Part shown: in pieces, positions 1-12,610 of the stretch
Numbering within the stretch: the stretch's first letter is position 1
Layout: each line of letters begins with the position of its first letter
Source of the DNA: Blepharisma stoltei ATCC 30299
Lineage: Eukaryota; Protista; Ciliophora
Direction: 5' to 3'
Length of the DNA: 64,000 bases
Assembly: GCA_965603825.1 (NCBI GenBank)
Contig: CBFDEM010000011.1
Coordinates: 1 to 64,000, forward strand
Program-made: the position numbers and the translations under genes
The notes under the pieces: generated by a model
Database searches by the model: none
What the model was told of the DNA's origin: nothing
Seen by the model: only the letters and a program-made list of their open reading frames with translations

Positions 1-663
1 CACCCTAACACCCTAACACCCTAACACCCTAACACCCTAACACCCTAACACCCTAACACCCTAACACCCTAACACCCTAACACCCTAACACCCTAACACC
101 CTAACACCCTAACACCCTAACACCCTAACACCCTAACACCCTAACACCCTAACACCCTAACACCCTAACACCCTAACACCCTAACACCCTAACACCCTAA
201 CACCCTAACACCCTAACACCCTAACACCCTAACACCCTAACACCCTAACACCCTAACACCCTAACACCCTAACACCCTAACACCCTAACACCCTAACACC
301 CTAACACCCTAACACCCTAACACCCTAACACCCTAACACCCTAACACCCTAACACCCTAACACCCTAACACCCTAACACCCTAACACCCTAACACCCTAA
401 CACCCTAACACCCTAACACCCTAACACCCTAACACCCTAACACCCTAACACCCTAACACCCTAACACCCTAACACCCTAACACCCTAACACCCTAACACC
501 CTAACACCCTAACACCCTAACACCCTAACACCCTAACACCCTAACACCCTAACACCCTAACACCCTAACACCCTAACACCCTAACACCCTAACACCCTAA
601 CACCCTAACACCCTAACACCCTAACACCCTAACACCCTAACACCCTAACACCCTAACACCCTA
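1..663 (+). repeat. Telomeric repeat array (CCCTAACA)n, about 83 units; chromosome end
   Basis: Perfect 8-mer tandem repeat from base 1, C-rich strand facing inward; this unit is the known heterotrich (Stentor/Blepharisma) telomere. Confidence 0.99.
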
Positions 664-3600
664 TTTTTTCATCAAATATTTTTAAATTAATTTTTGTAAT
701 AAAATCAATTTTTTCTCATAATTCTTCCTGAAGGTTTGCTAATTCTTTTAATTCAGATACATCACTTATGAGTCATAGATATGGTGTGGTTCTTTCGTAA
801 TTTACTCCAATAATATCTCTTAAATGATTGATAAAATCTCTTCTTTCATTCTTGTATTTTATACATATATTTATGCTGTGTTTCTCTGTTTCTTTCGTTT
901 TACATAAATTACACATATCATTTTGATTAATATTTTGATTTTTCTTTGAGTGTCTTAGGGCTGTTAGAGTTTGTGCAGGTCCTGCTGCGTATCTTCATGC
1001 TGCTTTAATTCTCGCTTCACTTACCAAGTTTTTATTTAGATTTCAAAATTGCAGTTGACATTTAGAGTTAAGGTTAATCTCTCTTAAGAATTTGTACGTT
1101 TTTAGTGTAATCTTTTTATCAATTTCTTTTTCATGTATTTTTTGCCAGTATCTTTTAACTTTTAATTTGACGTCTTTCTTTCAGTCTTTGTTAATTCAAT
1201 TTACTTCACTGTCAGAGTACCGATATGGTAAATTTAATTCATACTTGCTCAATAAATTTGCATATAAATCTTGAGTTGGTGTTATTCTGTCCTTTAAATT
1301 TTTAAGAAAATGTAATGAAATTTCAGAATATGAGTTCATTTCATATATCTTTTGTAGAAATATCAATGATTTTTGATCAATATATTGTTCGACTGTAGGA
1401 ATATTTAAATCAAGTAATATAGGCTCTATTGGTGTTTTGCTGTATACGTGGCAACATTCTCTAATAATTTTATTGAACATTCTTTGGATAAAAATAATTG
1501 CAGTTTTACTTCTTTTTCTTGAGCAAATTTCCAATCCATATGTGCATCTCGGAAGAAATATTGCTTTATAGCAGTTAATTAATGTTGTAGTTGGGATATT
1601 TAGCATTTTTCTAATTGCTGGTATAAATGAACTACATGTACTTATTGCTTTATTTTTTAAATAAGCATATTGTGATTGATCTAAACCTGTTGATTTTAAA
1701 TTTCCTTTAAAAACAATTCCTAAGTATTTATATTTATCAACTATTGGAATTTCAGTTCTTTTAAAATGTAGTTTGGGTAATTTTTGGAGGGTATTTTTTC
1801 TGTTTCTATTAATAATTGTCATCAATGCCGTTTTTTCAGGTCCTATATTTAAATCCATACCATTTTCTTCTGTTCATTTTTTAAGATTATTAAGAATTGA
1901 CTGTAGATCCTCACATTTTCCTGTAATAAAAGCTGTATCATCTGCATATTGAAAATTTATTTTTGAGTATAAATTCTCGTTTTTAATTAATTCTAGGCTA
2001 ATATCTTTTGTTACATTTTCAATATCATCGATATAGATATTAAATAATAATGGAGAAATCGCACTTCCTTGTCTAACCCCTTTAGTAATATCGATTTTAA
2101 ATGTTTCATTTCCGTTGATTATTAAGGTAGTCTTTTCTCCTTTAATCATCTGGGAGATTGATTTTCAACTATCATCTGTGACTCTCTTACTTTTTATCTT
2201 TTCCATGAGTTTAGTTCTATCCACAGAATCATATGCTTTCGAAAAATCTATAAAAAGTATATATGAATCACTCTTTTTCCCTTTATTATAATATTTTCGA
2301 TATTCTAAGGTATTTTTCAGTAAGAAACTTTGTGTTATGCATGATTTTCCTTTTCTAAACCCATGTTGTCTATCTGAGATCTTAACGTTGTTTTCAATTT
2401 TTCTTAGTTCAGCCTTGTCAAGAATCTTCATAAAACTGTTCATTAATGTTATAGGTCTGTGATTCTTCAATTCTTTATGATTTCCTTTACCTTTATATAT
2501 AAGAATAGTCTTAGCTTCATTTGCAACATCCGGTATACCATAAATTCTGCAAGTATTTAAAAAATGTGTTATTGCTTCTACCATTATATCTCCTCCTTTT
2601 TTTATTATTTCATTCGTTATATTATCTGGTCCAGGAGCTTTTCTGTTAGGCAAAGATTTAATAATATTCTCAATCTTTTTTGAGTTTCAAAGTTCATCTT
2701 CTAGACAACCTGCTTGTGGAATAAAAGATATCGTACTCCTAAATTGATCTTCAAATTCTTTTGTTCAAGATTGAATCTCAAATGCATTCATTGGTAAGAC
2801 CAGTTTGTTTTTATTCAATAATCTTTTTATTTTGTTTCAAGCTCCATAGGGATCATTTATGCATTGTTTTAATCTATTTTCACTTATTATTTCATATCTA
2901 TCTAGTCTTTTTAACTGATCAATGCATATTTTCTTTACTTTCCGTATTCTTTCAATAAATTCATTATTTTTCTGAGAATAGCAAAATTTGATTCATTCTT
3001 TGAGTTTGTTAATTCTTTTCCTTAAAATTTTCATTTCTGGAGTTTTAAAATGATCAGGCTGTAATTTAGTTTTTAGAATAATTGATTCTTCATCTAAGAT
3101 AGTCTTTATTTCGGTATAGATTTGAGAAGGGTTATTTGTTATGAAAATACCTTTTTCTTTGAATTTAAGGAAGAGTCTGCTTTTAAAGGCTTCATGTTCA
3201 TCTCCTTCTAGTTTATATCATGGAATAATTGTTTTTTGAGTTCCTAATGATATAATTATCGAAATGCGTGATAGGAGTAAAATATGGTTAGTATTTAATT
3301 GAGGGACTTCTATATAAATAATTTCTGATGTTGAGTTTGAGAGAATGTAATCAATAATTGTGTGTGTATTATGACCTCTAAAAGTTGATATTTGCATATC
3401 ATTGAGAATGTATAGATGAGAATCTTTTATAAATTTAGAAAATATCTCTCCTGTTAGATCATCGATTTCAGATAAATATCCTTTTAGATGTGCATTAAAA
3501 TCACCCAATAGTACTATTTGACGTCTATCCTTTTGATTCTTTTGAATAATTTCTTGAACTTCTATGATAAAGTTAATATAGTCATCAATTGATTTCTTAC

Positions 3601-3937
3601 TTTGGTGATTTGCTACTACTGGGGCATAAGCTACTATTATTAAGTAATCTTCAATTAATGTTGCTGTTATTCTATGATTGTTAGTTTCAATTGATGTTAT
3701 TAGATTTGCAAATGTTTCATGTATTAGTAACCCAGTTCCGCCTGATCCTCTGTTGCCAGCAATTGGCCCATTATTTCCAATTCAGATAAATCCTTGAATA
3801 TATAAGGAAGTTTTCAGTCATGTTTCAGCAATTCCAAGAATAGAAATATCATTAGTAATCATTAAATTTCTTAATTCTCTTCTAAACAATTCGTCTTTCC
3901 CTATTCCAGATATATTTAAATAATGCAAAATTTTTCA
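653..3937 (-). CDS. Retrotransposon pol: APE endonuclease + reverse transcriptase + C-terminal CCHC zinc knuckle (about 1,094 codons open; first in-frame ATG at 3862)
   Basis: ORF pieces 3218-3508, 2165-2653, 1874-2149 and 1196-1858 share one frame and are separated only by TGA. Motifs: YLNISG, IAETW, YAP, GDFNAH, IDYI; KAPGPD, RPITL, QHGFR, DFSKAYD, GVRQG..SPLLF, YADD, YLG; C-x2-C-x7-H-x4-C (CNLCKTKETEKHSINIC). Stop TAG at 655-653. Confidence 0.93.
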
Positions 3938-3990
3938 CTATACTTACTATTGGAGGGAGAATTTGAATGCTTGTTACTTAATGGAGAACT
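653..3990 (-). mobile_element. Non-LTR (LINE-like) retrotransposon abutting the telomere; 5' boundary approximate
   Basis: Single APE-RT-CCHC reading frame; 3' end joins the telomere via GATG-AAAAAA-TAGGGTGT; no TSD or telomeric repeat seen at the 5' side. Confidence 0.9.
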
Positions 3991-4068
3991 AAGAAGAACA
4001 GAACATCCTACTGGCATGGATCTTTGAACATCTGTATATTCTCTTGTAATTCTATCCAACCTTGACAT
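3916..4068 (-). CDS. 50-aa upstream ORF overlapping the pol start; N-terminus resembles an E2 ubiquitin-conjugating enzyme
   Basis: MSRLDRITREYTDVQRSMPVGCSVLL...EKFCII*; ATG preceded by AAAA; overlaps the pol frame by 22 nt. Confidence 0.35.
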   Translation of the reverse strand: MSRLDRITREYTDVQRSMPVGCSVLLSSPLSNKHSNSPSNSKYSEKFCII

Positions 4069-5069
4069 TTTTAAAATATAAACCTTCTACATTTTTTCCA
4101 TAAATTCATAAATAGAAGCTAAATCGAGTGTTTATACAAATGTTTGCCAGTTAATTATATTTTAAGTATAGATTATCTTAGAAGATTATCAAAATTAGTC
4201 ATTTACACTTATTTTAATAAAAATTGATATTAAATACATTAAAATGCTATTATTATTAATTAGGCAAGTCATGCTTAGGAGTAGTCATTTAAATAATAAA
4301 ATGATTTTTTCCCCAAATTTTTGATTAAAATATTTTACAATTTCAATATTTTTTATCCATTTCTATTTTAACTTTTAATGTATAAGAAGGAAACTAAGAT
4401 GGTTGCTCCAGCCTTATAAAGCACTTATTGTTCAATAATAGGCCTTGTTATTCGTTTAAATTTGCAGGGAATTGAAAAAGAATAGTGTGGGCCTTTGGAA
4501 TATTATTTTCAGAAGCAGGAATTATGCTATATATTGGCAAAGCACACAGATGATTTCTTTTTAAAAAATCATCGAACTTTATCTTCTGCCCCTAAAAAAA
4601 ATTGTCTCACGAATATTTGGAAAAGGGAGGGCTCCAATATATCAATTTACTTTTTCTATCTACTTATTTATTTTTCTTCAAAAATTTACAATATTTATTG
4701 GCCGCATCACTAAGATCATTTGTCTAAAGCAATACATTTCATTGAGCTTCACCCAATCTTAAATCAGAAATGCAATTTAATAAAATAACGTCAGATATAT
4801 AATGAGTGAATTTTAAGATAGCAAAATAAACAATATCTTGCTAGAATTTTAAAATGGTTTTAATAAAAATAGCTCCTGTGCATTTGATATGCTTACACAT
4901 CGTTATGGCAGTGAATTCAGGGTTCTAATTAAATTGAGACAAATTAAGAAATTTTTTATGACTTTAAGATTTTAAATTATAAATCTGATAGAGTTTTTAT
5001 GCTGATTTAATAAAAGCAAACTTTGTTATCCAATTTTCTTCTAAGCAAATTTATTGATATGCTTTAATA

Positions 5070-5949
5070 ATGAAAAAGCTCTTATTATATTTAGGCGCAG
5101 GAACTCTTGTAGCATTTTCATATGACCCAATTTACTATGCTTATGGACCTATAAAGAGCCTATAGATCTCAAAAAGAATTATGGAAGTTGCAGCTATGCT
5201 CTAATTACAGGTGCAAGTGATGGAATCGGAAAAGCCTTTAGTTGAGCAATTGCAGCACAAGGACTTAACGTAATCCTTGTAGGGAGAAATTCAGAAAAGC
5301 TCAAAACAGTCCAAGCAGAAATCGAGCAAGAATTTAACGTAAAAGTGGTGACCATGACTGCAGATTTAGAAGAAATTCATGAAAATCTTCAAAAATATAG
5401 AGAAATCCAAAGTCAGCTTCAACAATATGACATCTCAATTTTGGTAAATAACGTTGGGCAGCTTGTCAGAAAATCTATCGGAGCTATGAATCCTGAAGAA
5501 ATCAACAGATTAAACGAGTAAACTGTTATCCAATGGCCCATTTCACGAACATTCTTCTAAACCAGTTCGCTCATAGAGGAACTAGGAGTGCAGTTATAAA
5601 TGTTTCCAGTAAGTATCCTTTGTGTGGGGCAACTGTTTATAGTGCTACGAAATGTTATAATTATGGATTTTCAATGGCTATGGCGCATGAGTATAAAGAT
5701 ATTGCAGATGTATTAACATTGTGTCCTGGGAGGGTCAAGACTAATATGAATATTAATGAGAAAATTGGCTTTTTTTGCCCTCTTCCTGATAAAGTAGCTG
5801 AAGGCGCACTTAGGGATTTAGGCACAAGAAAATTATCATATGGGGCTCCAGGTCATGAGCTAATTGGATGAGGTCTTGGGTTTTTGCCAGAGAACTTAAG
5901 AATAGACCTTTCAGGGTTTTTGATTAAAAAAGGTGTTTTTCATCAATAA
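5070..5949 (+). pseudogene. Short-chain dehydrogenase/reductase (17-beta-HSD / very-long-chain 3-ketoacyl-CoA reductase type) with two frameshifts
   Basis: TGASDGIG, LVNNVG, NVSS and YSATK motifs; frame breaks near 5145 and 5518, each consistent with one missing base (may be assembly errors). Confidence 0.75.
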
Positions 5950-6007
5950 TAAATTTCCAAAAAAATTATCTAAAAATGAATTATTATGACTTTTCAAAAA
6001 TAAATTA

Positions 6008-6990
6008 TTAACAATTAGGCTTGATTCTCTTCATTCCTCAATCATCTATAGCTGGCTTCCTCTTTAATTCAACTGATTCGAAATCGACAGCTTCTAGGTC
6101 TATTTCAAACTCATATCGCTGCTCAATCCCATTTATTTTTTTGAAATGCTTGATTTCTTGACTAATTTCAGCTGGGTAGTTTCCACAGTTTTCTGGCAGA
6201 TCTCTACATAGCCGGTCTAAGCTTTGCTATAATTTCATCTGGTCTGACTCCTTGCTGCTTGGAAAGTCTCTTCAAAGTCATAGTAAGCCAGCTTTTACTT
6301 TCCTCAAATGCTTCTTTTTGCTGGCATTTCCTTATTTTCTGCTTTCTTCTTCATTATTTCCTGGCATTGTAATTTCTTCAGTTTTATTTTCAATTTTTAC
6401 ATCATTTTTCATATTTAGCTAGTTTAAACCTTTGATTTCTACAGAAAGTGCTATTTTAATTTGATTTCTCCTTAATTTAAGCACATTAGGTCCGATTTCA
6501 ATATAAGCAAAAGTCCCAGTATATGCAGATGAGACCCTTTTTCTTGGAGATCGCCCTGTAAAAGCATTTTTTTAAAATTTTAGGATTTTGTTTCTGCAGC
6601 AGCCCAAAATGTTCCATCAAGCTATGATTATTCGTTTTTTCTTTTTTTCCCTAGCAGAAAATTTGTAAGCTGTATAAGTGTGTTTATCCCATTTCTCAGT
6701 CTTTCTAGTACTTCAATAATTTTCTTTGCTTCTTCTGTGAAGTCTTTTTCTTCATACCATTATTGGCTTTTATATTTGATGAATAAGTGCTTGGGATTTT
6801 AACTATATTTGCCAAATATTCTTTGTCTAAAAATTCTTTGGAGTAGATATTGAGATTTTCTTTATCATCATACTGAGTTTCGTTTTCTAGAACGCTGATT
6901 TGACTGTTGATTTTGAAGTATGAGCATTCATTTATAAGCTGAGTCTTTCTACAGCGCTAGGATCGGCCTTAAAAATACAAAGCAATAATC
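6008..6990 (-). pseudogene. Decayed coding-like segment, unknown product
   Basis: Protein-like Lys/Glu-rich stretches (EKDFTEEAKKIIEVLERL; EFEIDLEAVDFESVEL) broken by several TAA/TAG and frame changes. Confidence 0.3.
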
Positions 6991-7086
6991 AAAGCCAAAA
7001 CAGCTTTTTTATATTGCAATGCCATATCATTAATTTTAAATTAGAGAGCCTAATAGTGATTTAATAATTATTAGCAATATATTTTA

Positions 7087-8409
7087 ATGCGATCCAGCTA
7101 TTGGCTGCTATTTATTGGGCTTTCTATTCATTTCTTAAGCAATTTCTCAAGAGGCTATTCAGTTTATGACGAAACAATACCAACTTTAAGAGACTGTCCT
7201 GCTTTAGATGCAAACAAACATATTGAGATTATGAGGGCTAGTATTTACTATAAAAGTAGGCAAAAAACAGATATATTCATGAAATTGGTTTTTGATTCTA
7301 ATTATATTTATACACTCCTTACACCCTATATAATCCCTGAAGAAATAAAAAAACTCAAGAACAGCCCAGACGAGATCCGAGTATTTTACCCTTCTGCTAT
7401 ATGACTTGAAGAAAGAAATGTTTTTCTTGCCGTTGTTCAAGTAAATCTTTGAGACACTTATAGTTTCCTCTACTCTACTTTTTTTGATTCAGAATGAAAT
7501 GAAATTCGCGACGAAGATTACATTGGCAATACCAAGGTTCCTGGAATCATGGAAATCGAAAAAATATGGTTGCTGTATTTGTCAGGGCCCGAAGATCCCA
7601 GGATCTTCCGAGGTCCTAAAGGAGAGCTGTATTTTATCTTTAATAAGCTGACAAAAGATTTTAAAAGGACAATAAATATTTATAGCTATTCTACTGGGAC
7701 TTCAAGGCAGCTCGTCTTAGAGGAACATCTATGCAGCCAACATATCCTGGAGAAAGATTGGACCCCTTTAATTGTAGATGATGAGCATATGTATTTCATC
7801 TATAACTATAAAAATTTGCAAATTATTGACTGCACTGAGGAAAACGAAACATGCAAAAAGGTTAAGGGGATATATGATCCTGTTCTCAACTCTATAAGGG
7901 GAGGTTCTCCATACGCAAGGTATGCTGACACAAACTATTTTATCTCCTTTATATACACTAATGTAAGTCAAGACGCTCCTGAAATCAAAATGAAGCCTTA
8001 CAGGCCAGCGTTATCCATAATAGAGTACATTGAAGGAGTCAGGCCAGACTTCAAGCTAATTTATGCAAGTGAGCCCATTGATTTTGGAAATAGAGTGTTT
8101 TTGTCTCCAGTGTCACAATATAAATCTATAAAGCAAACTTTTGATAGCGCTATGTCAAGGATTCTGATGGTTCACTCTATATCAAGATGAAATTACAAAG
8201 AAGATATTGTGGATTTAACTCTCACAGTTAATGAGTCTTTTGCTATCGCTATTAGGGTAAAAGGCATAACTGACCTTGTTCAATTCATAATCAATATGTA
8301 TGAATATGGGAGAATTGAAGAAAAAGAAGACTGTGCGATACTCCTGGCCTTCAATTATCACAGGCAATTATGGCCAAGGCATCTTTTCAACACTATTAAA
8401 TTCAGCTAA
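7087..8409 (+). CDS. Secreted or type II membrane beta-mannosyltransferase (GT91/Bmt)-like or GH130-fold protein, 440 aa
   Basis: Three ORF pieces in one frame joined through TGA; N-terminal hydrophobic segment; GPEDPRIF, EKDWTP and RGGSP motifs. Confidence 0.6.
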
Positions 8410-8684
8410 ATTGGGCAAATGAGGGGGGGATCCTTATATTGCCTTAATCTAAAAATAAATTTTTTATTTAAGATAAAAAGTAGAGATTTTTTAGAATAAA
8501 ATTATTGACTCCCTTTAAATACGAAAAAAAATTTGTTCCAAATAAACGAAAGTGGATTAAAGTTTATTATATTTCTTTTAAAGATATTTGCTTTGAAAAC
8601 TTATATTATGACCCTTGCTATAAATTAATAGAAAAAGCATTAATGTTTTTAAGAAAAGGTTAATTACCCTTAAAGAGACTAGGC

Positions 8685-10086
8685 TTAGACTTGAGTAAAA
8701 TCGAAGTTAATCGTAATTGGGAGATCGCTTTCTTGAACATTAGGAGCATTAACTATGCATTGTTTCAAGCCTGCTGTGCAGCCAGTGATAGTCCATGTAC
8801 TTGCATCGATACTTGAACCTGAGTTTGATGTAGCTGTAAATGAACTTTTCGACAGCCCAGTTTTAAGTGCGTGAGCAAAGTCAATCACGATATTCTGCCC
8901 ATCGAAGCTGACCTCGAATCCAATAGAATCGGCTCTGCAAGTAGTTCCTATTTGAGTTATTGCTTCAGCACAAGCATAGCAGTTGGGACCTGGGTGGCAA
9001 GATGTGCAGGAGTCGATACAAGCTAAGTAAAATCTTACAAAGACAAGATGTTGAAGTGGCGCTATCGTCATTAAGGAAGTATCCAGTCGCACAAAAATCG
9101 CATTTAGTGCTTTTTGTTGAGCATTCAGCACATTTGTTGGCTGTGGCGCAACCTAAGTAGAAATTACAGCGATAATTTTTAAGTTCATATGCAGCGCCAT
9201 CACAATTTTGGCACCAACCTCCAGAATTTCTAGCTGAATCAGGATCACAAGCAGTGCATCCAGTAGCATCACAATTGGTGCAATAATCCTTTGATGATAC
9301 GCATCATTGGCTTCCCATATTATCGTTCTGGCATACACTATCAATGCAAGTTTCAGGAGTGCAAGGCAAAGCTAAATCAGATGTAGTTGAGCCATCATTT
9401 AATGTTATTGTATCAAAGGAAGAATTTATGGTAGCACTTTTTGTAGCTACAACCTGATGAAACTTTCCCTTGATTCCTTTTCCGAATAAAAAGTTCCCAC
9501 CAGGCATAGAATAATTAACTCTTGTGTTGGAGATTTTTTCTATGCCAGGCAACATAACCTCTAAAGTAATGCCTAAGCCATCCATAAAGTGAAACACAAT
9601 AAAGAAATATTTGTCTGTATAGGAATTACTTAAAGGGACAGTGAAGGAAAAGTCATCAGCTGAATTAGTGGTTGTCGCGTCTGAAAAATAGGAAACTTTT
9701 AAGGAACCATTCACAGTTGATGAGACCTTATAATGTGGTCCACTGTCAATTCCGAATTGAAAAACTTTGTCGCTAATAGTTGATTCGAAGTTTACCCAAA
9801 ATCCAAATGCGTATTCTATAGTTGCGATTATGCTGGTTACGTCTGCTGTTAAACTAAAGCCTGCATTATTCAGGCTTATTGAGTTGCAGCTAAGAAATGG
9901 GTTTATTTGAGTGCTATCATCTGAATTTATAGCAGGCTCACCTGAATTTTCTCAATTGTTAATGCTTTGGGTTATAGTATCTTCTGTTAATTTGACAAAA
10001 CGCCAATCACCTAATAGTAAAAATCCTTTGGCAAATGATAAGAGGACGAGGACGACGAGAATATTTAGTGGCTTTGAATAAACCAT
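8685..10086 (-). CDS. Secreted cysteine-rich protein (signal peptide, beta-rich domain, CxxC furin-like repeats); two tiny introns
   Basis: MVYSKPLNILVVLVLLSFAKG signal; frame open through TGA; removing 16-nt intron 9023-9038 restores the CxxC repeat frame. Confidence 0.75.
9023..9038 (-). other. 16-nt spliceosomal intron GTAAGATTTTACTTAG
   Basis: Removal is required to join two frames (CL-S-CIDSC). Confidence 0.85.
9153..9167 (-). other. Probable 15-nt intron GTAATTTCTACTTAG
   Basis: Matches the local consensus; in-frame and stop-free, so not forced. Confidence 0.6.
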
Positions 10087-11833
10087 TTTATTTATAAACC
10101 ATTTTATTTTACTTTTATAAATGTTTATTAAGGAAATTTTAATAGTAAACTTTTTCAAGAAATTCTTTGATCGTTTTTCAAATTTATAAATTGATGACTA
10201 GAATAGAAATGCAGGTTCAGCCTTGCTTTAAAATCCCAATTAAAATATCGGTAATATTGCCTATCTTTGAAACTGCCAAGTTGGCCTATATTTAAAACTA
10301 ATTTTGTGCTTAAATATAGAGGTAAAGGATTTTGGATATTCAAAATCACTGGTGCCTTTTGAACGAATATAACCCTTAATTACAGTCCACGTCAGCCATA
10401 ATTTTACCTAATAAAGAAATAGTTTTTTATGCAAATATTTAATCCTAAGTGATAGTTATAAATTTTAAGCTAATATGCTTTTGATAAGGATAACTTTCTA
10501 TAAGAAAGAAGCTATGAAGACAGGTTTATTTTGTTCACCAGTTATAAATTCTTAGTTTTATAATAACTCAGCCTAATGGCAAAAAAATCAGCTTCTGTCT
10601 ATCCTAATTAAAGAGAAAACTTATTAGATTTAAGAACATCTAATTCTACTAGCTATAGGACATATAAGCTTGCCGCTTTTTAGATTAAAAGATGTTTTAA
10701 TCTTCAGCTTTGAATAGAAGAAATAACCCTAAATTTAATAGTCAAAAGAAATTGGCTTTAAATTCATCTAAAATTAAAAATTTTTATCAACACTTTTCAA
10801 AGCCTTAATCTGACTAAATTGCTGAATTTTTATTACGAGTTCTACCATTATAAAATTAGAATAAGTATATGCAAAATGGTGCAAGAAACGCTTTAATAGT
10901 TAAATGAGGATAAATGATTCGCCAAAAATAAATTCAACTCATAAATTTCGTTTTATGAACCAAACTCAAGTAGAAATCTGCGAGTGAAAGTTAACTTCAA
11001 GATAAGCACTTAGAATATCATATCAAACTCACTTCTAGAATATAATAAAATAACAAAGAAAAGAATTGCCCTAAGAAAGCTGAATTAGCACTTAATTATG
11101 GGCAGATATTTGGGAATGAAGTTGAAGAACTAAAGTCTATAAGCTTGAACTCATCAAAACTAAAGAAAATTAAATGTGATAGGCCTAGGAAAGTTTAATA
11201 ATCTTTCTAATGAACTTATTAAGGCTGGAGTCTTCTTATAATAAATCGCTTCCACCATTTTATCTATGATTAAATATTGAGATAATAAGTTTTTCTAAAA
11301 TACCTTACTAACTCCCCCCTATATATCTTGATCTCTTAATTATTTTCAACAGTGGCTTCGTCTATTGCCCATGCCAATCAAATTTCTTGTTCAAAGAAAT
11401 TGGCGGGTTAATTCAAAGCCTAAAAGGCTCGGTTTTTATTTCTTTGTGAGGAATTTCTTTTTCTTCGTCAGTAACTGTGATTTTTCCTTTGTCATTGCTT
11501 CAGTTTGCTATGTTTAAAATAAGCATGGCTGGTAAGTCTGAGTTTTTGATGCTTTGGGAGATATAGGAGCTGGAATTTTCGTTTTTATGGACCGAACCAT
11601 GCTGAGGAAGTCTTTTTCACACTTTCAAATTTAGAACTGGTATATGGATTAAAAGGTATAAATTTTCGTACTGAAAGGAATTTTTATTCCAATTTTAAAC
11701 TATTAAAAATAGCAATTTACCTATATTTTGGAAATAAGGTAGCTTAAATTTGAATTTTTATTAAATAATTTTTGTTTAAAATCTCTTTACTCTAGTTAAT
11801 AGTTTACATAATGTATTTTTTATCAGTTTAGTC

Positions 11834-12610
11834 ATGAAAAATAGAAGTCCAGCAACTAAAGGGAAAAAGGGTCTATCAATTACAATATCTCCATCTTCTC
11901 AAGGAAGCTCTTCTAATGTTTCTTTGAAAGAGCCTCAGCAAAATAAAAATACTATTCAGAAAAAGACTATAAATCATCAGCGAAGCAAAACTCCAGTCAT
12001 CATAATGCCAAAAGACGAGCTTTCCCCAGCAAAAACGACTGACTCAGTTCCAAGCCCTACAAAGAATGAATTCCTTTTTGAAAGAGCTTTGAGCGAGCTT
12101 TTATCAGAGATAGAGAATCTTCTAGTGCAGCATAAAGAATGGAGACTTTCTAAAATCAGCAAAATCGAATTATTTAAACAAGAATATGAAATTTCAGATG
12201 CTGAATTGAGCAGTTGTACACTTGGGAATAAAATAATTGACATAAGAAAAAAGTTTGATGAATTAAAAGAGGTCATAAAAATAATGCAAGGGGATATTGA
12301 AAGTCTAAGCAATATATCAGCATGAGAGCAAGTTCAGAAGAAAAAAGCAAAAGAAATAAAAGTAGATAATGAGCTTCTTGGAATAATAAGAGAAGCAAAG
12401 TCAAATCTCCAATTGCTTAAGCAAGCTTCAATGGAGAGTGAAGTGAGCATTCCAAACGATAATCTCATGATCAAGAATTTGCAGCTTCAGCTTCAACAAA
12501 GTAAAAGGGATAGGAGAAACTTGGAAATTCAATTAAAATGCCCAGAAAAATTGAATGAAGAAATGATTTCTCAAACAGTTGATCAAATGCTACAAGATGG
12601 GCCATCTTAA
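11834..12610 (+). CDS. Hypothetical coiled-coil protein, 258 aa
   Basis: Two ORF pieces in one frame joined via TGA at 12323; TAA stop. Confidence 0.7.

Follow-up and report, generated by a model that had tools for sequence, protein, structure and literature searches.

The window examined here, meaning the whole 64,000-nucleotide (nt) stretch analysed, is the left end of contig C11 (C11:1-64000) of the macronuclear (MAC) genome assembly of the ciliate Blepharisma stoltei ATCC 30299, and it opens with a telomere joined directly to a copy of a retrotransposon without long terminal repeats (a non-LTR element) that belongs to the family of repeats named rnd-1_family-276. Both the element family and its presence in the somatic genome have already been published (Seah et al. 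2023, PMC9942856; Singh et al. 2023, PMC9942806), and our analysis concerns the junction between this copy and the telomere, together with the related copies in the 41.46 Mb, 64-contig genome that we searched (positions prefixed by q are window coordinates used as the BLAST query, and L002 and similar labels refer to other genome loci compared with the window). The array of CACCCTAA repeats, 83 copies after rounding, caps the contig end with 663 nt of perfect repeats; past position 663 the window holds no CCCTAACA or TGTTAGGG dimers, and the flank on the far, 5' side of the element has neither telomere repeats nor a second copy in the genome (coordinates are collected in Table 1).

When UGA is read as tryptophan, the minus strand of the element is open for 1094 codons, in which TGA occurs 16 times and TGG once. 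This agrees with a preliminary description of this DNA made from its letters, which had traced an open minus-strand frame from position 3937 through an APE-type endonuclease, a reverse transcriptase with a YADD site and a CCHC zinc knuckle, and had estimated that about 70 codons followed the knuckle (we count 69). The domains are supported by Pfam matches to PF14529 (Exo_endo_phos_2, E 2.8e-11) and PF03372 (E 3.8e-5) on the stop-free piece window:3221-3781:-, and to RVT_1 (PF00078), which matched two stop-free pieces (E 1.5e-12 and 9.8e-11) and scored 111.8 bits when all six frames were searched. The endonuclease lies N-terminal to a reverse transcriptase with a Y/FxDD site, as in APE-type long interspersed nuclear elements (LINEs), and the family was assigned to LINE/RTE-X by RepeatClassifier (PMC9942856). 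The closest solved relative of the reverse transcriptase is human LINE-1 ORF2p (E 1e-13), while a phmmer search of the APE piece against PDB found nothing significant. Only distant relatives, no more than 34% identical, were recovered by a search of 1.8 billion representatives, and exact-product look-ups in Logan/ENA for the 47-aa and 220-aa table-11 open reading frames (ORFs) of the element returned no record.

On the sense strand the junction reads ...TTTGATGAAAAAA and then TAGGGTGTTAGGG, with the translation F D E K I G C *. The sequence bears out the earlier reading of this junction, in which the frame passes from FDEK through I, G and C to a TAG at 655-653 inside the telomere array, and in which A6 alone separates the element from the telomere repeats with no 3' untranslated region (UTR). 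The sense strand can be written here as ...AAAAAA(TA)GGGTGTTA, where the TA overlap is inferred from a second copy of the element, L002. The G-strand directly extends the chromosomal 3' end with a short overlap, and the chromosomal side is strongly AT-rich over its first 60 nt, as would be expected of a site of de novo telomere addition. Telomere addition sites in Blepharisma are described as having a 2–3 bp overlap with AT-rich chromosomal DNA (supplementary information of PMC9942806), and the junction matches them in both respects. As the repeats lie on one side of the element only, and the G-strand continues the chromosomal 3' end, we interpret the junction as the product of telomerase healing rather than of insertion into a telomere array.

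Table 1. Features at the telomeric end of the window (positions in the window; a dash marks the direction of reading where the higher position is given first).
Feature	Position	Strand	Details
Telomere, C-strand repeats	1..663		CACCCTAA x 82.9, 100% matches; the minus strand is the G-strand, running 5' to 3' toward the contig end
TAG stop of the long frame	655-653	minus	Inside a telomere repeat
Junction TA	662..663		Telomere or element origin ambiguous; L002 likewise has TA after A6
Non-LTR retrotransposon copy, rnd-1_family-276	664..3951	minus	3' terminus at 664; similarity to family 273 fades at about 3935-3951
Open frame, UGA=Trp (translation table 4)	656..3937	minus	1094 codons; last three (I G C) and stop from junction or telomere bases
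C-terminal CCHC zinc knuckle	913-863	minus	C-X2-C-X7-H-X4-C; 69 codons follow
Reverse transcriptase domain (RVT_1)	1712..2476	minus	YADD at 1948-1937
APE-type endonuclease domain	3275..3934	minus	Translated motifs N (YLNISG), E (AETW), YAP, GDFN, IDY, TNH
First in-frame ATG	3862-3860	minus	Codon 27; inside the APE domain, past the conserved Asn of the YLNISG motif
Upstream in-frame TAG	3940-3938	minus	Immediately 5' of the open frame
5' flank	3952..5044		Single-copy, AT-rich; separates the element from the first host ORF (5045 onward)

The published account of rnd-1_family-276 gives three MAC copies longer than 3 kb that are more than 98% identical and lie on different contigs, with a consensus of 3270 bp encoding APE and RVT_1 (Seah et al. 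2023, PMC9942856). The window copy over 664-3935 is 3272 nt long, in keeping with the length of this consensus, and judging by sequence the three long copies are the window copy, C51:678999-682203 (L002) and C45:169557-172724 (L003). The latter two are 99.5–99.8% identical to the window copy (16 differences in 3205 nt for L002 and six in 3149 nt for L003) and occupy unique internal loci with non-telomeric flanks; shorter copies of the family are also present (L004–L006). The 3' end of L002 falls on the base identical to window position 664, after which it has the same A6 and then TA, but unique DNA follows instead of telomere repeats, and because of this we regard position 664 as a terminus of the element and not as a telomere target. 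The 25-mer at the 3' terminus also has a third match, at C8:171152, but similarity does not extend beyond it, and we rejected it as an AT-rich chance match.

The 5' termini of L002, L003, L004 and L006 cluster within 10 nt (3865-3874), 3–12 nt upstream of the first ATG, and it is on the 3' side and not the 5' side that family-276 copies are truncated, at varying positions (q700, q1721, q2084 and q2292). No target-site duplication was found for L002–L004 and only a doubtful 7-mer for L006, and none is possible at the telomere-capped end of the window copy. LINEs are usually truncated at the 5' end, so this pattern is the reverse of the usual one, and with their constant 5' ends, variable 3' truncation and missing target-site duplications the internal family-276 copies also look atypical. 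We note that TA is the last shared dinucleotide at four of the eight scorable family-276 junctions, compared with a TA frequency of 10.3% in the element (about P=0.006 by a rough binomial estimate made by hand).

Further insight into the ends of the window copy came from rnd-1_family-273, a sister family of about 72% identity with eight MAC copies (L008–L015, on C40, C30, C15, C37, C59, C39, C46 and C57), which is collinear with window 665-3935 and encodes the same APE–reverse transcriptase–CCHC protein. Upstream of APE, family 273 has an ORF1-like N-terminus of about 539 aa in the same frame, and the window has nothing comparable (tblastn with this region against window 3801-12000 gave only non-collinear matches with E>2). 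Indels of 6 nt and 1 nt set the window apart from family 273 at the 5' edge, and the first few window codons are therefore not in the ancestral frame. Past the residues equivalent to FDEK, family 273 adds 46 codons, its own TAG, a UTR of about 20 nt and a microsatellite tail; as family 273 runs on for these 46 codons before it stops, family 276 is without a native stop here. No copy of a family-276-type 3' remainder is present in the MAC assembly, where that region is matched by family-273 copies only. Family 273 thus has the start, stop and 3' UTR or tail of a complete LINE, and the window copy does not. Relative to family 273 the window copy is incomplete at both ends, and the element cannot be called intact, as it had been in the preliminary description: it has no ATG before codon 27, a TAG lies directly upstream, and it is shorter than family 273 on both sides.

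Several other features of family 273 can be recorded here. Because of the in-frame ORF1-like region, the length of the element, in at least the C40 copy, comes closer to 4.9 kb than to the 4.1 kb that has been published, and this region (C40:706345-707962; c40 construct 2345-3962) carries a zinc knuckle of the CNTCNEIGH type that is absent from family 276. All family-273 copies have a gap at q3391-3577 that corresponds to an internal eliminated sequence (IES) of about 185 bp in the APE domain, and the window copy has kept this segment; the published IES of rnd-1_family-273 within the APE domain is 173–182 bp long (PMC9942856 and its supplementary information). The family-273 tails are variable, consisting of (TAATCC)n, (AATCC)n or (AATC)n (for example L008:4359-4400), which suggests that the template slips when reverse transcription begins, and an 11-bp target-site duplication, TCAAATGCTTT, was found for the C39 copy. 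At C15:653503-653712 (L063/L064) a family-273 copy lacks a 68-bp stretch of 3' coding sequence (positions 187-254 when L008:4100-4392 is the query), possibly through a deletion or as another small excised segment. The last APE motif of the window copy, at 3284-3292 (minus), reads TNH compared with SDH in the distant relatives P0044, P0047, P0013 and P0006, and this change of a catalytic-site Asp to Asn is found in both of the young families, 276 and 273.

The preliminary description had also proposed that the element takes its stop codon from the telomere, and the position of the TAG within the array is indeed as stated. It has no special significance, as the G-strand unit of 8 nt contains TAG and any frame that enters the repeats, in whichever of its phases, will automatically meet an in-frame stop within eight codons. 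The other long copies behave in a like manner: the frame of L003 is open into both of its flanks, and L002 has gained a CAG-to-TAG change 22 codons from its end. Between the window copy and these two copies, the differences are 6:10 and 3:3 synonymous to non-synonymous, with no sign of purifying selection, and the open frame therefore reflects the youth of the copies and not a demonstrated function. Negligible expression has been reported for all RVT_1 and APE genes (PMC9942856, PMC9942806). The capture of a stop codon is a by-product of the junction and not a design.

A second meeting of family 276 with a telomere was found at the right end of C51. Here a 99.6% identical copy covering q2084-3866 (L005, C51:863502-868283, with the element at 865002-866783) is followed within 4 nt by G-strand repeats, and its end at about q3866 falls in the 3865-3874 cluster of 5' termini. 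The telomere begins at about 866788 and reaches the end of the contig at 870806, a length of about 4 kb in the assembly, and its first repeat is irregular (GGTTTGTTAGGG). Telomeres therefore coincide with family-276 termini at two contig ends (C11 left and C51 right), which is the modest new point of this work; the sections of the two earlier papers drawn on here make no mention of a copy adjoining a telomere, of a family without its own stop, or of a second end capped at the 5' terminus (PMC9942856, PMC9942806). The element end that faces the telomere is the 3' end at C11, and the 5' end at both C51 right and C59 left.

At C59 a family-273 copy (L065, C59:1-3200) begins only 307 nt from the 2.4-kb left telomere of this 67-kb contig, with its 5' end telomere-ward. 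Fragments of older LINE subfamilies (76–92% identical) are also found near contig-end telomeres, at distances of about 40 nt (L020, C36:3008-3347), 217 nt (L028, C23:699015-699289) and 1.8 kb (L066, C12:843729-844339). The left end of C36 had appeared in the BLAST results as a second junction between a telomere and the 3' end of the element (row 1-713), and this was found to be spurious: unrelated AT-rich DNA comes next to that telomere, and the fragment of a related element about 40 nt away is inverted and 82% identical.

The first of two models put forward in the preliminary description was that of a telomere-targeted or telomere-terminated LINE. With targeting of the SART type, a nick in the C-strand (CCCTA^ACA) would prime reverse transcription and leave A6 followed by TAGGGTG, and the junction does have the geometry of SART1Bm, with an A-run joined to the AGG of the G-strand, while the 3' flanks of both the window copy and L002 begin with TA. 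The likeness ends with this geometry and does not extend to insertion inside an array or to targeting. SART1Bm inserts at TT^AGG within arrays that are three repeats long or more, and both its 3' UTR and its poly(A) are required (PMC7265360), but the window copy has neither a 3' UTR nor poly(A), and there are no telomere repeats 5' of it. Several copies that end at the same base and run into telomere repeats had been expected under this model; one of the two complete 3' termini of family 276 adjoins a telomere, the eight family-273 tails lie in unique DNA, and all of the other 3' ends examined in both families adjoin non-telomeric unique DNA. The copies at unique internal loci and the inconsistent orientation toward telomeres (C11 compared with C51 right and C59 left) do not suit the model either, and as MAC telomeres are remade in each sexual generation, an insertion in the germline could not have targeted them. 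Targeting of the SART type is largely refuted, and we consider it very improbable as an explanation of this junction.

The explanation we favour, and hold to be probably correct, is that the window contains a young copy of a MAC-resident LINE family, at the boundary of which the chromosome was broken and then healed by de novo telomere addition. The germline DNA would run on beyond the 3' terminus of the element, and during MAC development this distal DNA would be eliminated or broken off at the TA beside the last A-run. Telomerase would then add GGGTGTTA repeats to the 3' end that this exposes on the sense strand of the element, so that the frame without its own stop would enter the repeats and meet its first in-frame TAG three codons later. 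The break might fall on the element boundary through TA-bounded excision at the element edges, or through homology to the parental MAC that ends there. The sequence shows the anatomy of the copy, its family membership, its truncation relative to family 273, the non-telomeric sites of other copies and the meeting of telomere and element termini at two contig ends; the developmental nature of the break, and the reason for its position on the boundary, we infer from several observations. The telomeres cap opposite termini of the element at C11 and C51 right, as expected for healing at element boundaries; TA at four of eight junctions fits TA-bounded excision; and partial excision of these LINEs as IESs, which has been reported (PMC9942856), fits likewise. 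Paramecium offers a precedent, in which telomere addition at fragmented chromosomes goes with the loss of germline repeats (PMC3408717). This is in essence the second model of the preliminary description, breakage at the 3' end of the element followed by telomerase healing, with which the junction geometry, L002 and the C51 end all agree.

It should be noted that a number of points weigh against this explanation. The comparison was confined to the MAC assembly, and the TA statistic comes from eight junctions. Imprecise elimination of the Paramecium type would not lead one to expect that the telomere fits the element terminus to the exact nucleotide. In addition, most contig ends of the assembly were trimmed of repeat-rich 'cruft' (1.3 Mb) and then capped from the telomere-bearing read that mapped nearest to the trimmed site (supplementary information of PMC9942806), and further high-identity copies of these LINE families are found in the cruft (supplementary information of PMC9942856). 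LINE-derived loci are over-represented near contig ends, with six of 36 lying within 5 kb of an end compared with 0.56 expected (P=1.8e-5). This enrichment would favour our explanation but is confounded by the curation of contig ends, and for the same reason the C11 junction may represent a minority of molecules.

The last point can be developed into an alternative, in which the junction was taken from one or a few telomere-bearing HiFi reads and most MAC molecules continue past position 664, so that this position would be one of some 47,000 scattered alternative addition sites. The trimming and nearest-read capping of contigs and the family copies in the cruft would both allow this, as would the large proportion of addition sites seen in a single read (38,686 of 46,705 alternative sites; supplementary information of PMC9942806). 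On the other hand, the intergenic density of addition sites is 2.8 per kb summed over 145x coverage (ibid.), at which a random site would rarely fall within 0–2 nt of a terminus defined independently by L002, and the same kind of coincidence would be needed again at the right end of C51. We think it unlikely that the junction is a minor end of this sort.

Another alternative takes the atypical structure of the internal copies as its starting point. If family-276 RNA were copied at programmed or accidental double-strand breaks without endonuclease targeting, then telomerase might cap a free cDNA or second-strand end that would otherwise be ligated to the far side of the break. Telomeres would in that case lie exactly on termini set by the RNA, and the junction would be a healed intermediate of retrotransposition. 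The absence of target-site duplications, the near-constant 5' termini and the variable 3' truncations would all be in keeping with such an origin, and the truncation pattern resembles that of the endonuclease-independent LINE-1 insertions reportedly described by Morrish et al. in 2002 and 2007. At the right end of C51 it is the cDNA strand, with its terminus at the 5' end of the RNA, that telomerase extended, and the window copy and L002 share their 3' terminal base. Against this, a somatic event would need to spread through a highly polyploid macronucleus, and the window copy reaches 60–80 nt further in the 5' direction than the other copies, so that the same RNA cannot simply have been copied here. 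We rate this alternative as distinctly improbable.

Breakage at the boundary of the element followed by telomerase healing hence remains our preferred explanation, and the element itself looks like an ordinary copy of a published LINE, for which neither telomere-seeking behaviour nor a designed borrowing of stop codons holds. A broader and more speculative proposal, to which we give little credence at present, is that chromosome ends in the macronucleus of Blepharisma form preferentially at family-276 termini, either through capped intermediates or through breakage or excision signals at the element boundaries. If this were true, a retrotransposon kept in the somatic genome would have a part in setting the ends of somatic chromosomes. 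The genome paper reports that no breakage motif was found (PMC9942806), and capped termini, if they are dominant ends, would offer a handle on the choice of breakage sites and on the interplay between retained transposons and DNA elimination.

Beyond the 5' flank of the element, the first host ORFs of the window (5045-5946, plus strand) resemble a short-chain dehydrogenase, to judge by the GRNSEKL...VNNVG motifs of their table-4 translation, and are divided among frames, possibly by a very small intron. A scan of the window for bacterial promoters and terminators performed no better than on shuffled sequences.

Telomere-associated LINEs are known from several other systems, including SART1 and TRAS1 in Bombyx, HeT-A and TART in Drosophila and GilM and GilT in Giardia, and the window element is like them in being an APE-type LINE that adjoins telomere repeats. 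It differs in that it does not lie within an array, is not site-specific, is inconsistent in its orientation, forms no arrays of its own, lacks both a 3' UTR and poly(A), and occurs alongside an active telomerase repeat. SART1 and TRAS1 have telomere repeats on both sides and share an insertion site and orientation, and family 276 does neither. The Drosophila elements HeT-A, TART and TAHRE form head-to-tail terminal arrays that replace telomerase repeats, with their 3' ends centromere-ward, in contrast to the single copy of the window, which has its 3' end toward the chromosome end and is capped by 663 nt of telomerase-type repeats. A further parallel is provided by Paramecium, where chromosome fragmentation and telomere addition are linked to the elimination of germline repeats, with either telomere addition or internal deletion as the outcome (Le Mouel et al. 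2003, as presented in PMC3408717). By that account, both ciliates would form de novo telomeres where transposon-rich germline DNA is eliminated; in Paramecium, however, the transposon does not survive and telomeres are added at sites scattered through a region, whereas in Blepharisma the element is kept and the telomere sits on its terminal base.

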